A stretch of DNA of 64,000 nucleotides from Pseudomonas aeruginosa PAO1 (GTDB lineage: Bacteria > Pseudomonadota > Gammaproteobacteria > Pseudomonadales > Pseudomonadaceae): the NCBI RefSeq assembly GCF_000006765.1, contig NC_002516.2, one strand, 5' to 3'. The stretch's first letter is position 1. Every line of letters starts with the position of its first letter. The notes below the pieces were generated by a model. That model had not been told where the DNA came from. It ran no database searches and was given only the letters and a program-made list of their open reading frames with translations. This document shows, piece after piece, positions 44,492-60,267 of this stretch. Both the position numbers and the translations under genes were made by a program.

Positions 44492-44848
44492 TTACTTGCG
44501 GATCGGCTTACGCGGGCCCTTGCGGGTACGCGCGTTGGTCTTGGTACGCTGACCGCGAACCGGCAGACCGCGACGATGACGCAGACCGCGGTAGCAACCG
44601 AGGTCCATCAGACGCTTGATGTTCATGTTGATTTCGCGACGCAGGTCACCTTCGGTGGTGATCTTCGCGACTTCGTTACGCAGCTGATCGATCTGCTCGT
44701 CGCTCAGGTCCTTGATCTTGGCAGCCGGGTTTACGCCGGTGGCTGCGCAGATGCTCTGAGCAGTAGTGCGACCAACACCATAGATGTAGGTCAGCGAGAT
44801 AACAGTGTGCTTGTTATCCGGAATGTTGACGCCTGCAATACGGGCCAT
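44492..44848 (-). CDS. rpsM: 30S protein S13
   Basis: 118 aa, [10 protein letters not shown]... Confidence 0.99.
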
Positions 44849-44905
44849 TCAGAAAAACTCCAATTGACAGCTACCCTGCGCCCAGGAAGCCAAGAAAGGG
44901 CGCGG

Positions 44906-44934
44906 ATATTAGCGCTGTAATAGCAAATAATCAA
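44906..44934 (-). promoter_or_regulatory. Alpha-operon sigma70 promoter
   Basis: TTGATT-17 bp-TAATAT, followed by a GC-rich discriminator (CCGCGCC). Confidence 0.7.
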
Positions 44935-49939: not shown

Positions 49940-50254
49940 TCAAGCCTGAACCGGTTTCTGGGTCGACTTGAAGACACGAATTTTCTTACCGTCTTCTACC
50001 TTGAAGCCAACGCGGTCAGCCTTGCTGGTTTCAGTATTGAAGATGGCGACGTTGGAGACGTGCAGAGGCGCCTCCTTCTCGACGATACCGCCCTGTTGGC
50101 CGAGCATCGGATTGGGCTTGGTGTGGCGCTTGATCAGGTTCACCCCGCCGACGACCAGACGGTCGTCAGCGAGAACCTTCAGCACCTTGCCACGCTTGCC
50201 CTTGTCCTTGCCGGCAATGACGATTACTTCGTCGTCACGACGAATCTTTTGCAT
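49940..50254 (-). CDS. rplX: 50S protein L24
   Basis: 104 aa; KOW motif [11 protein letters not shown]. Confidence 0.99.
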
Positions 50255-50635: not shown

Positions 50636-50658
50636 ATAATTTCTCCGACCCCTAGTCC

Positions 50659-54624: not shown

Positions 54625-55260
54625 TTAACCGCGAGCCTTGGCTGCCGGACGCACGATCACATCACCGCCGGTAGCGCCGGGAACGGCACCCTTGACCAGC
54701 AGCAGATTGCGTTCAGCATCGACGCGCACGATCTCCAGGGATTGAACGGTTACCCGCTCCGCACCCAGATGACCGGACATTTTCTTGCCCTTGAACACTC
54801 GACCAGGAGTCTGGCACTGGCCGATGGAACCCGGGACGCGGTGGGAAACGGAGTTACCGTGGGTGTTATCCTGACCACGGAAGTTCCAGCGCTTGATGGT
54901 GCCCGCGAAGCCCTTACCCTTGGACTCGCCGGTAACGTCTACCATCTGGCCTGCCTGGAACAGATCGACAGTGATCTGGTCACCAGCGGCATACTGCTCT
55001 TCGCCCAGACGGAATTCCCACACGCCGCGACCGGCGGCGACATTCGCCTTGGCAAAGTGACCAGCTTGCGCTTTGGTAACGCGAGAAGCACGACGCTCGC
55101 CGGCGGTGACTTGCACTGCACGGTAGCCATCGGTTTCTTCAGTCTTGAACTGGGTGACGCGATTCGGCTCGACCTCGATGACCGTAACCGGAATAGAGAC
55201 ACCTTCCTCGGTGAAAATGCGGGTCATGCCGCATTTACGACCGACAACACCAATTGTCAT
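54625..55260 (-). CDS. rplC: 50S protein L3
   Basis: 211 aa from ATG 55260 (MTIGVVGRK), AAGAGG SD. Confidence 0.99.
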
Positions 55261-55276
55261 GTTGTAAACCTCTTGA

Positions 55277-55325
55277 GTGTACGGGGCTTTCACCCGCTAT
55301 GGCCGCCCATTTCAGAGCGTTACAC
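55277..55325 (-). promoter_or_regulatory. Candidate cis-regulatory mRNA element mimicking 23S rRNA H18-H20
   Basis: GUGUAACGCUCUGAAAUGGGCGGCCAUAGCGGGUGAAAGCCCCGUACAC folds as a three-way junction; see findings. Confidence 0.7.
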
Positions 55326-55342
55326 GACCAATGCCGAAGGCA

Positions 55343-55660
<318 letters not shown>

Positions 55661-55717
55661 TCAGACTCCAATTTACCATTCCCAACGGACGGACTACGCC
55701 CGTTAAAAGGAGGCGCA

Positions 55718-55746
55718 ATTGTACGGATGCCCCCACAGGGTGTCAA
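55718..55746 (-). promoter_or_regulatory. S10-operon sigma70 promoter
   Basis: TTGACA-17 bp-TACAAT plus discriminator TGCGCC. Confidence 0.88.
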
Positions 55747-55763
55747 TATTTAACCAACGAACG

Positions 55764-55791
55764 AAAAAAGGGGCCCCGGAGGGCCCCTTTT
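55764..55791 (-). terminator. str-operon (tufA) terminator
   Basis: AAAAGGGGCCC-CGGA-GGGCCCCTTTT, with U6 on the minus strand. Confidence 0.9.
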
Positions 55792-55810
55792 CTGATGGCA
55801 GGATCAGCGA

Positions 55811-57004
55811 TTACTCGATGATCTTGGCAACCACGCCGGCGCCAACGGTACGGCCGCCTTCGCGGATCGCGAAGCGCAGGCCATCTTCCATGGCGATCGG
55901 AGCGATCAGGGTGACAACCATCTTGATGTTGTCGCCCGGCATTACCATCTCTACGCCTTCCGGCAGTTCGCAGTTACCGGTCACATCGGTGGTACGGAAG
56001 TAGAACTGCGGACGGTAGCCCTTGAAGAACGGGGTGTGACGACCACCTTCTTCCTTGGACAGCACGTACACTTCGCACTCGAACTTGGTGTGCGGCTTGA
56101 TGGTGCCCGGCTTGGCCAGTACCTGGCCACGCTCTACGTCTTCACGCTTGGTGCCACGCAGCAGGATACCAACGTTCTCACCAGCACGACCTTCGTCGAG
56201 CAGCTTGCGGAACATTTCAACGCCGGTGCAGGTAGTCTTGGTGGTCGCCTTGATGCCGACGATTTCCACTTCTTCCTGGACCTTGATGATGCCGCGCTCT
56301 ACACGACCGGTTACCACGGTACCGCGGCCGGAGATCGAGAACACGTCTTCGATCGGCATCAGGAACGGCTGGTCGATGGCACGAACCGGCTCCGGAATGT
56401 AGGAGTCCAGGGTCTCTACCAGCTTCTGCACGGCGCTTACGCCGATGCCGTTGTCATCCTTGCCTTCCAGCGCCATCAGCGCGGAACCGATGATGATCGG
56501 AGTGTCGTCGCCCGGGAAGTCGTAGGTGTTCAGCAGATCGCGAACTTCCATCTCGACCAGTTCCAGCAGCTCGGCGTCGTCGACCATGTCGGCCTTGTTC
56601 AGGAACACGACGATGTAGGGAACGCCTACCTGGCGGGACAGCAGGATGTGCTCGCGGGTCTGCGGCATGGGGCCGTCGGCAGCCGAGCAAACCAGGATCG
56701 CGCCGTCCATCTGGGCAGCACCGGTGATCATGTTCTTCACGTAGTCGGCGTGACCGGGGCAGTCAACGTGGGCGTAGTGACGAACAGCGGAATCGTATTC
56801 AACGTGCGAGGTGTTGATGGTGATACCGCGGGCCTTTTCTTCCGGCGCGTTGTCGATCTGATCGAAAGCACGAGCGGAACCACCCCAGGTATCGGAGCAG
56901 ACCTTGGTCAGTGCAGCGGTCAGAGTGGTCTTGCCATGGTCAACGTGACCGATGGTGCCGACGTTGACGTGCGGTTTGTTACGTTCGAATTTTTCCTTAG
57001 CCAC
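55811..57004 (-). CDS. tufA: Elongation factor Tu
   Basis: 397 aa, GTG start; [17 protein letters not shown]. Confidence 0.99.
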
Positions 57005-59755: not shown

Positions 59756-60127
59756 TTACTTCGGACGCTTGGCGCCGTACTTCGAACGACCCTGCTTACG
59801 GTCTTTGACACCCGAGGTGTCCAGCGAACCGCGCACGGTGTGGTAACGCACGCCCGGAAGGTCCTTTACACGACCGCCACGGATCAGCACTACGCTGTGC
59901 TCTTGCAGGTTGTGACCTTCACCACCGATGTACGAGGAAACCTCGAAACCGTTGGTCAGACGTACACGGCATACCTTACGCAGTGCCGAGTTCGGCTTTT
60001 TCGGCGTGGTGGTGTATACGCGGGTGCATACGCCACGACGTTGCGGGCAGTTTTGCAGCGCAGGCACGTCGCTCTTGTCGACCATGCGCTTGCGCGGCTT
60101 ACGCACCAGCTGGTTGATAGTTGCCAT
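59756..60127 (-). CDS. rpsL: 30S protein S12
   Basis: 123 aa; TPKKPNSA and RVKDLPG, both wild-type at the classic streptomycin-resistance lysines. Confidence 0.99.
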
Positions 60128-60157
60128 CTATAGCTCCACTGATTGTCTTACGACACA

Positions 60158-60188
60158 CAAACGAAATGACAGAGCGTGCGCCCTGCCA
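60158..60188 (-). terminator. Premature-terminator hairpin in the rpsL leader (resembles the described Pseudomonas rpsL leader)
   Basis: UGGCAGGG-CGCACG-CUCUGUCA (8 bp with 2 G-U pairs) followed by UUUCGUUUG, between the promoter and rpsL. Confidence 0.6.
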
Positions 60189-60204
60189 ATTTTCGGGGTA
60201 CAAA

Positions 60205-60233
60205 ATAGTAAAGAGGTTCTTGTACACCGTCAA
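60205..60233 (-). promoter_or_regulatory. str-operon sigma70 promoter
   Basis: TTGACG-17 bp-TACTAT. Confidence 0.85.
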
Positions 60234-60237
60234 GACA

Positions 60238-60267
60238 AAGCCCCGGCTATCGGGATAGCCGGGGCTT
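60238..60267 (-). terminator. rpoBC terminator
   Basis: 14-bp stem AAGCCCCGGCTATC/GATAGCCGGGGCTT with a U-rich tail. Confidence 0.85.

Follow-up and report, generated by a model that had tools for sequence, protein, structure and literature searches.

The 82-nt spacer between rpsJ and rplC of Pseudomonas aeruginosa PAO1 holds a near copy of helices 18–20 (H18–H20) of 23S rRNA, which is seen directly in the sequence. We propose that this spacer is a cis-acting translational operator, through which free uL4, possibly with uL24, would repress rplC and the genes downstream; we place the probability of this reading at roughly 70%. Comparative data support a feedback switch that would act on rplC and the downstream genes and spare rpsJ. 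Binding to the candidate operator, the identity of the ligand, repression and its downstream spread are what we infer.

A near copy of 23S rRNA H18–H20 in the rpsJ–rplC spacer

We analysed a 64-kb stretch of NC_002516.2 (P. aeruginosa PAO1; hereafter the window), the minus strand of which carries fusA, tufA, rpsJ, the spacer, rplC, rplD and then the remaining S10 and spc clusters. The spacer reads UGCCUUCGGCAUUGGUC-GUGUAACGCUCUGAAAUGGGCGGCCAUAGCGGGUGAAAGCCCCGUACAC-UCAAGAGGUUUACAAC on the minus strand, and its letters agree with those quoted in the original prediction. The features of the locus are as follows.

55718–55746, minus strand: sigma-70-like promoter of the S10 operon, TTGACA-17-TACAAT, upstream of rpsJ (from a scan)
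55343–55654, minus strand: rpsJ (uS10/NusE), the upstream gene, outside the proposed control
55345–55343, minus strand: rpsJ stop codon UAA (read from the sequence)
55326–55348, minus strand: P0 hairpin GGCUAAUGCC-UUC-GGCAUUGGUC, 23 nt, −12.5 kcal/mol, z = −5.6
55277–55325, minus strand: mimic of the 23S H18/H19/H20 three-way junction, the 49-mer GUGUAACGCUCUGAAAUGGGCGGCCAUAGCGGGUGAAAGCCCCGUACAC (Rfam LSU model match and own-species 23S alignment)
55325–55322 with 55280–55277, minus strand: closing helix of the mimic, 4 bp
55321–55320, minus strand: unpaired AA of the mimic
55319–55304, minus strand: H19-like hairpin of the mimic
55303–55296, minus strand: junction strand of the mimic, GCCAUAGC
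55295–55283, minus strand: H20-like hairpin of the mimic
55268–55274, minus strand: rplC Shine–Dalgarno (SD) region AAGAGGU (read from the sequence)
55258–55260, minus strand: start codon AUG of rplC (uL3), 16 nt past the element; gene call of 211 aa
54009–54611, minus strand: rplD (uL4), the second gene past the element, Pfam Ribosomal_L4; first candidate ligand
49940–50254, minus strand: rplX (uL24), in the same uninterrupted cluster; second candidate ligand

In P. aeruginosa, P0 includes the final rpsJ codon and the UAA stop, and no nucleotide separates it from the mimic. On the other side, the GAGG core of the rplC SD begins 4 nt past the closing helix, so the element does end a few nucleotides before the SD, as had been claimed. 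Neither promoter-like nor terminator-like sites were detected by scans of the spacer, and none of the latter kind anywhere in 55150–55850. Since the promoter precedes rpsJ and the spacer holds no such sites, the element lies inside a polycistronic mRNA. The rpsJ–rplC spacer is the sole long intercistronic gap of the cluster; the remaining gaps from rplC through rplE are at most 23 nt or the genes overlap, which fits with translational coupling downstream of rplC. The gap between rpsQ and rplN (window 50636–50658) is just 23 nt, which suggests that the S10 and spc clusters are fused as one transcription unit, unlike in E. coli, and that the uL24 gene rplX may therefore share an mRNA with the element. 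Rfam also matched the Pseudomonas rpsL leader (rpsL_pseudo; window 60127–60248, minus strand, 103.8 bits) and the S4 binding site of the alpha operon (Alpha_RBS; window 44816–44911, minus strand, 50.8 bits), and the other r-protein operators of the cluster are therefore known ones.

The significant alignment to 23S domain I on which the original prediction depended was found: model positions 332–380 of the bacterial LSU rRNA family (RF02541) match 55325–55277 exactly (26.9 bits, E = 9.1e-7), with all three model helices of the three-way junction kept. No other significant match came from the 221 nt surrounding the site when Rfam was searched permissively, and neither at gathering nor at permissive thresholds did Rfam hold another family for the element. 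The match covers 49 of 2925 model positions, scores 26.9 bits against a gathering score of 50 and is flanked by rpsJ and rplC. The spacer element is thus not a bacterial 23S rRNA gene, its match to RF02541 being partial and below gathering. It aligns without gaps to nt 295–343 of E. coli K-12 23S rRNA (rrlH), with 36/49 positions identical; we take this stretch of 23S rRNA to be the minimal L4/L24 fragment. The 23S rRNA of the same species was located by a contig walk from RpsL via RplJ to the rrn operon beside birA, on a locus that is 99.6% identical to the window over the overlap. It reads GCGGAACGCUCUGGAAAGUGCGGCCAUAGUGGGUGAUAGCCCCGUACGC, letter for letter the sequence given in the original prediction, and is 41/49 identical to the element without gaps. 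The closing helix differs from it by a compensatory double change (C-G to U-A), and both this change and the ungapped 41/49 identity had been foreseen. Conversely, a covariance model made from the spacers alone recovered genuine 23S rRNA, from P. aeruginosa at 61.7 bits and from E. coli at 50.1 bits. Together, the Rfam match and the two gap-free alignments bear out the claim that 55325–55277 copies 23S H18–H20. Gap-free identity across the whole 49-nt domain points to an origin in a copied rDNA segment and not to convergence.

The minimum free energy (MFE) structure of P0 plus the 49-mer is a hairpin followed by a three-way junction (z = −3.0; 0/200 shuffles as good). The 49-mer alone also folds into the junction, with an unexceptional energy (z = −1.2). 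The isolated 49-mers of two real 23S rRNAs (P. aeruginosa and E. coli) do not form the junction; where own-species 23S rRNA has G·A and U·U, the fourth closing pair of the mimic is U-A and its H19 is paired throughout. The proposed fold therefore stands as a three-way junction, except that the predicted GAAA loop is a six-nucleotide loop, UGAAAU, on the H19-like hairpin. A different pairing in the MFE structure of the whole spacer, GUCGUGU with ACAUGAC, would sequester the rplC AUG. We rejected it, because it could form only with P0 and the closing helix both opened and because the complementarity is found in some Pseudomonas only.

Distribution, conservation and architecture of the element

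A search with the S10 protein, taking one genome per species, gave 80 gammaproteobacterial loci, a sample without Moraxellaceae. The element was present in the rpsJ–rplC spacer of 49/80. Carriers belong to the NCBI orders Pseudomonadales, Cellvibrionales and Oceanospirillales: all 22 Pseudomonadaceae, Cellvibrionaceae, Spongiibacteraceae, Halieaceae, Porticoccus, Oleiphilaceae, Marinomonas, Marinobacterium, Amphritea, Vreelandella, Saccharospirillum, Thalassolituus, Bacterioplanoides, Njordibacter and one Endozoicomonas. By inspection of the spacers (11–54 nt) and by the covariance model, the other 31 loci have no element; they come from Enterobacteriaceae, Yersinia, Arsenophonus, Vibrionaceae, Pasteurellaceae, Shewanella, Alteromonadaceae, Colwellia, Pseudoalteromonas, Idiomarina and a second Endozoicomonas. 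The two Endozoicomonas loci differ, one (L061) having the element in a 111-nt spacer and the other (L034) a 15-nt spacer without it, which suggests either a recent loss in this genus-level group or a misassigned metagenome-assembled genome (MAG). In Njordibacter (L079), the genes upstream of rpsJ are ordered differently.

The covariance model, built from 30 distinct spacers, gave one match per element-bearing locus, always in the rpsJ–rplC spacer, and zero matches in the 31 element-less loci. It gave a single match across the whole 64-kb window and found no copy of the element near rplN or rplX there. As the genome loci had all been chosen beside rpsJ and their context was thus biased, we scanned metagenome contigs with a context-free DNA pattern. 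All 80 loci returned have L3 (rplC) directly downstream, and S10 (rpsJ) is upstream in 77/80, the other 3 contigs ending too early on that side.

The conservation and covariation that the original prediction called for were found in the rpsJ–rplC spacers of both sets. In Pseudomonadaceae, 20/23 species have an identical 49-mer and mean pairwise identity is 97.9%, compared with 67–70% at the four-fold degenerate sites of rpsJ and rplC. Among the 30 distinct genome sequences, 95% of cells are standard pairs and 6/13 pairs have changed on both sides. None of 500 shuffles reached the observed pairing and double changes, and register-shifted controls fell to 22–64% paired. Covariation occurs in H19 and the closing helix (C-G/U-A, G-C/A-U, U-A/C-G/U-G and G-C/A-U), and the lone C-G pair of the junction is invariant in these sequences, as is GGG/CCC in H20. 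RNAalifold independently gave the same junction. In the metagenome set, H19 is 97.9% paired, with 28 double-change cells against 6.1 expected; the outer parts of the element were fixed by the search pattern, so this set confirms H19 only. The H19 hairpin ranges from 3 to 14 bp and is always formed.

Invariant or nearly invariant positions of the mimic are A5, A6, C24, A28, G32-G33-U34, A38, G39, C41, C42 and U45, and these are the universally conserved bacterial 23S nucleotides of the junction and H20. The H19 loop (UGGAA), conserved in 23S rRNA, varies freely in the mimic. An invariant junction and H20 with a free H19 loop fit with selection for recognition at the junction and H20, and this is the pattern expected if selection does not act on the tertiary contacts that H19 makes inside the ribosome. 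The closing pairs G-C, U-A and G-C (55325–55322 with 55280–55277) are almost invariant across the three orders, and those of real 23S rRNA differ between species (GCG/CGC in P. aeruginosa, GUG/CAC in E. coli). The stronger conservation of GUG/CAC in the mimic, compared with 23S rRNA, hints at an extra constraint, which might be a tuned, weak stability beside the SD or a second interaction.

Candidatus Pseudomonas adelgestsugas, a 1.8-Mb endosymbiont, keeps the element, with pairing preserved via G-U pairs. Its own 23S rRNA, reached by a walk from TufA via RpoC and CoaX to rrn, reads GCGAAACACUCUGGAAAGUGUGGUCAUAGUAGGUGAUAGCCCUGUACGC and is 31/49 identical to its mimic; each of the two is 43/49 identical to its P. 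aeruginosa counterpart. In this one lineage, the mimic and the resident 23S rRNA have changed at different positions, so that neither gene conversion nor homogenisation with rDNA is at work, and no informative co-variation between mimic and 23S rRNA was seen in the comparison. H20 of the endosymbiont 23S rRNA carries a compensatory G-C to A-U change (AGG...CCU) that is not in the mimic. The endosymbiont loci (L219/L218) retain rrn-birA-coaX-secE-nusG synteny, have lost tufB and have an S10 called at 119 aa.

The surroundings of the mimic were counted in 113 distinct spacers. A hairpin of unrelated sequence (6–14 bp) ends 0–3 nt ahead of the element in 103/113, the SD core begins 0–4 nt past the element in 105/113, and the AUG lies 12–16 nt past it in 104/113. 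The distance from the rpsJ stop to the element ranges from 14 to 110 nt (38–110 nt in Cellvibrionales and others). Since this distance is variable and that to the rplC AUG is fixed, the conserved relation is to rplC.

Some lineages depart from this layout. Marinobacterium (L027), Amphritea (L028), Marinomonas (L036) and Njordibacter (L079) have a conserved AACUGGCAA inserted after the closing helix and ahead of the SD, which thereby lies 9–12 nt from the element. UGGC could pair with the junction strand (GCCA/GCCG), to which it is complementary, and a pseudoknot or alternative fold is possible. A more 23S-like GUGGAAU stands at the 5′ end in L027, L028 and L036, and also in L078 and L055, both of which are without the insert. 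In deep-branching MAGs labelled 'Pseudomonadales bacterium', a terminator-like hairpin with a U-run stands right after rpsJ (L070, 2837–2868), and the element follows ~100 nt beyond it, behind a large P0. Similar sequence is present in L073 and L038; the terminator scan supports the site in L070 and not that in L038. The L070-type hairpin might act as a partial terminator and thereby set the S10:L3 ratio. Given this support in L070 but not in L038, and with no promoter found by the scan between the hairpin and the element, a separate transcript headed by the element is not something we claim for these MAGs.

Proposed regulation of rplC and rival explanations

Only uL4 and uL24 specifically bind the H18/H19/H20 junction (PMC6426284). 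Binding is cooperative, about six-fold, and the two act as 'molecular clamps' that stabilise the junction in its folded form (Geffroy et al. 2019, PMC6426284). The element combines likeness to an rRNA site, a place beside a ribosome binding site in the gene cluster that encodes the candidate ligands, and conservation with covariation, which are three features of the rRNA-mimic autogenous operators of r-protein operons. In the proposed mechanism, surplus free uL4, encoded two genes downstream, would arise when uL4 and uL24, which join the ribosome early in its assembly, outrun 23S rRNA synthesis. Free uL4, possibly together with uL24 from the same gene cluster, would bind the mimic and clamp the junction, and the P0 hairpin that abuts the mimic would stand in for the rest of (distal) H18. 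Since the 3′ strand of the closing helix ends 0–4 nt before the rplC SD, this P0-extended ribonucleoprotein would be expected to block or trap the 30S subunit at the rplC start. Repression would then pass to rplD and onward through translational coupling, as all downstream intercistronic gaps are at most 23 nt, and rpsJ (S10/NusE), upstream of the element, would escape control.

A more specific version is that the operator senses both proteins together, which would bind it cooperatively as they do 23S rRNA, as a readout of the first 50S intermediate, and that it arose by rDNA duplication at the base of Pseudomonadales, Cellvibrionales and Oceanospirillales; we offer this combination tentatively, as a possibility that we somewhat doubt. 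If the two-protein part were true, the operon would read the free pool of the first 50S assembly intermediate and not a single protein. If the duplication part were true, the operator would descend directly from rRNA, and not by the convergent mimicry assumed for other r-protein operators.

Several other explanations would account for part of these data. That uL24 alone is the physiological ligand, repressing rplC and all genes beyond it, its own gene rplX among them, within a fused S10–spc unit, is unlikely in our judgement but a live alternative. Compared with uL4, the assembly initiator uL24 makes more close contacts with the fragment and stabilises it mechanically more strongly; it also touches both strands of H18 beside the junction (PMC6426284), and in the mimic the SD emerges on that side. 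In addition, the 23-nt rpsQ–rplN gap means that rplX may sit on the mRNA of the element, and both strands of the closing helix are nearly invariant in the mimic. Weighing against uL24 as the sole ligand, we know of no organism in which it is an autogenous repressor; rplX is ~5 kb downstream and rplD is the second gene; and neither rplN nor rplX has a copy of the element nearby. Moreover, the established regulator of the homologous E. coli operon is uL4 (PMC10931766). A structured RNA with a non-regulatory role, as an mRNA stabiliser or processing site (S10:L3 ratio), an insulator that separates terminating from initiating ribosomes or an in-cis landing pad that captures nascent uL4/uL24 with no control of translation, seems to us less probable again. 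Such a role could draw on the overlap of P0 with the rpsJ stop codon in Pseudomonadaceae, on the terminator-like hairpin and U-run after rpsJ in L070 and on the fact that S10 doubles as NusE, so that uncoupling it from L3 could be useful. However, it explains neither why a junction contacted by proteins, with H20, should be copied nucleotide for nucleotide nor why the distance to the SD is fixed at 0–4 nt, and a generic stabiliser or insulator would have no need for near-invariant single-stranded junction bases.

The overlap of P0 with the rpsJ stop codon in Pseudomonadaceae would equally suit an element that acts mainly on rpsJ, protecting or destabilising its 3′ end without blocking rplC initiation, and retroregulation of an upstream gene is known in the S8/spc operon. 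Yet in Cellvibrionales and others the element lies 38–110 nt from the rpsJ stop and still 12–16 nt from the rplC AUG, and we regard an action on rpsJ as very improbable. Gap-free identity of 41/49 to own-species 23S rRNA is also what a functionless rDNA-fragment relic or an assembly artefact, there by chance, would show. To this we attach almost no weight: 49 named species from three NCBI orders, and 80 metagenome contigs, have the element at one and the same site, with conservation well beyond that of neutral sites and with compensatory changes, and its evolution is independent of the resident 23S rRNA. A relic rDNA insertion is excluded by conservation and covariation. Repression of rplC and the downstream genes by free uL4, with or without uL24, is the reading we prefer.

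Novelty and comparison with known systems

Autoregulation of r-protein operons through rRNA mimics is classical, and internal operators are known. None of the cis-regulatory families of Rfam 15 reached its gathering score at the site, the window yielding only rpsL_pseudo and Alpha_RBS, elsewhere, and Rfam found nothing in the spacers of 20 further loci. Searches of full-text literature outside subscription-only sources, including searches with sequence strings, returned no description of the element, and in surveys of r-protein leaders only an archaeal L4 leader and an unrelated rpsJ motif of Peptostreptococcaceae were relevant. The RNA itself, its position in the operon and the literal copying of a whole rRNA junction therefore appear not to have been described before. 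To our knowledge, with 49 contiguous nucleotides and no indels, it is the most literal rRNA mimic among r-protein operators.

The element offers a concrete candidate answer to how the S10 operon is regulated in the group that contains P. aeruginosa, P. putida, Halomonas and many marine heterotrophs: compared with E. coli, the RNA and its place in the operon both differ, and the ligand is probably the same. Such literal mimicry makes it a clean system for the origins of operators and for RNA recognition by uL4 and uL24, and as a small autonomous RNA (72 nt with P0) it lends itself to structural studies of how 50S assembly begins. It merits annotation as a new RNA family, since the covariance model separates all instances cleanly.

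Compared with H18/H19/H20 of 23S rRNA (E. coli nt 281–359, core 295–343), to which uL4 and uL24 primarily bind, the element has the same length, the same junction and the same conserved junction and H20 nucleotides. It differs in being part of an mRNA, in having H18 cut to 4 bp with the 5′ side replaced by the unrelated P0, and in its H19 loop, which is not conserved. Unlike the isolated 23S 49-mers, it folds alone, owing to the U-A fourth pair and the repaired H19.

The E. coli S10 leader, the L4-interacting RNA of Zengel and Lindahl, belongs to the same operon, and the element presumably shares its ligand and its purpose, a feedback exerted by free uL4. In E. coli, uL4 represses its own operon, S10, through an mRNA site that competes with the 23S site (PMC10931766). 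The leader is a 5′ UTR before rpsJ with hairpins HA–HG and a NusA-dependent attenuator, and it also controls rpsJ (PMC3616713). It has no sequence similarity to 23S rRNA, whereas the element is a literal copy of 23S sequence that stands after rpsJ without a terminator. Neither the position of an E. coli-type leader nor its HD/HE hairpins with an intrinsic attenuator is found in the element. Such leaders are kept in enterobacteria, Haemophilus and Vibrio and not in Pseudomonas (PMC10931766; PMC3616713), and Moraxellaceae have been reported to have one (PMC3616713). Allen et al. 1999, as cited in PMC10931766, found Pseudomonas to be without E. coli-type L4 control of the S10 operon.

With a profile of the enterobacterial S10 leader, nhmmer gave long matches in element-less loci and no match in most element-bearing loci, including nearly all Pseudomonadaceae. 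A few element-bearing loci (e.g. L048 and L024) gave short matches at the rpsJ start, to the last ~30–45 leader positions, and one, Amphritea (L028), gave a longer but weak match (E = 0.003). The short matches agree with the similarity in 'HG alone' described for Pseudomonadaceae (Fu et al. 2013, PMC3616713), and probably reflect the conserved SD and first rpsJ codons. The complementary distribution of element and leader coincides with a phylogenetic split into two clades, and therefore carries little weight as a sign that one functionally replaced the other.

Another RNA upstream of rplC-rplD is the L4-Archaeoglobi r-leader, for which L4 is the proposed ligand (Eckert and Weinberg 2020, PMC7247131). 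It precedes the same genes as the element but is archaeal and of unrelated structure, and Rfam gave no match to it at the site. The 'rpsJ motif' (Narunsky et al. 2024), a 5′ UTR motif of Peptostreptococcaceae, is unrelated to the element. In its layout, the element is like the S8 and S7 operators, in lying inside a polycistronic mRNA as a mimic of an rRNA site ahead of the regulated genes. These internal rRNA-mimic operators of E. coli, at rplE (spc) for S8 and in the rpsL–rpsG spacer (str) for S7, act on the next gene and the coupled genes downstream, and leave promoter-proximal genes outside direct control. They use different proteins and folds and have a small core in common with rRNA, whereas the element copies a whole 49-nt domain.
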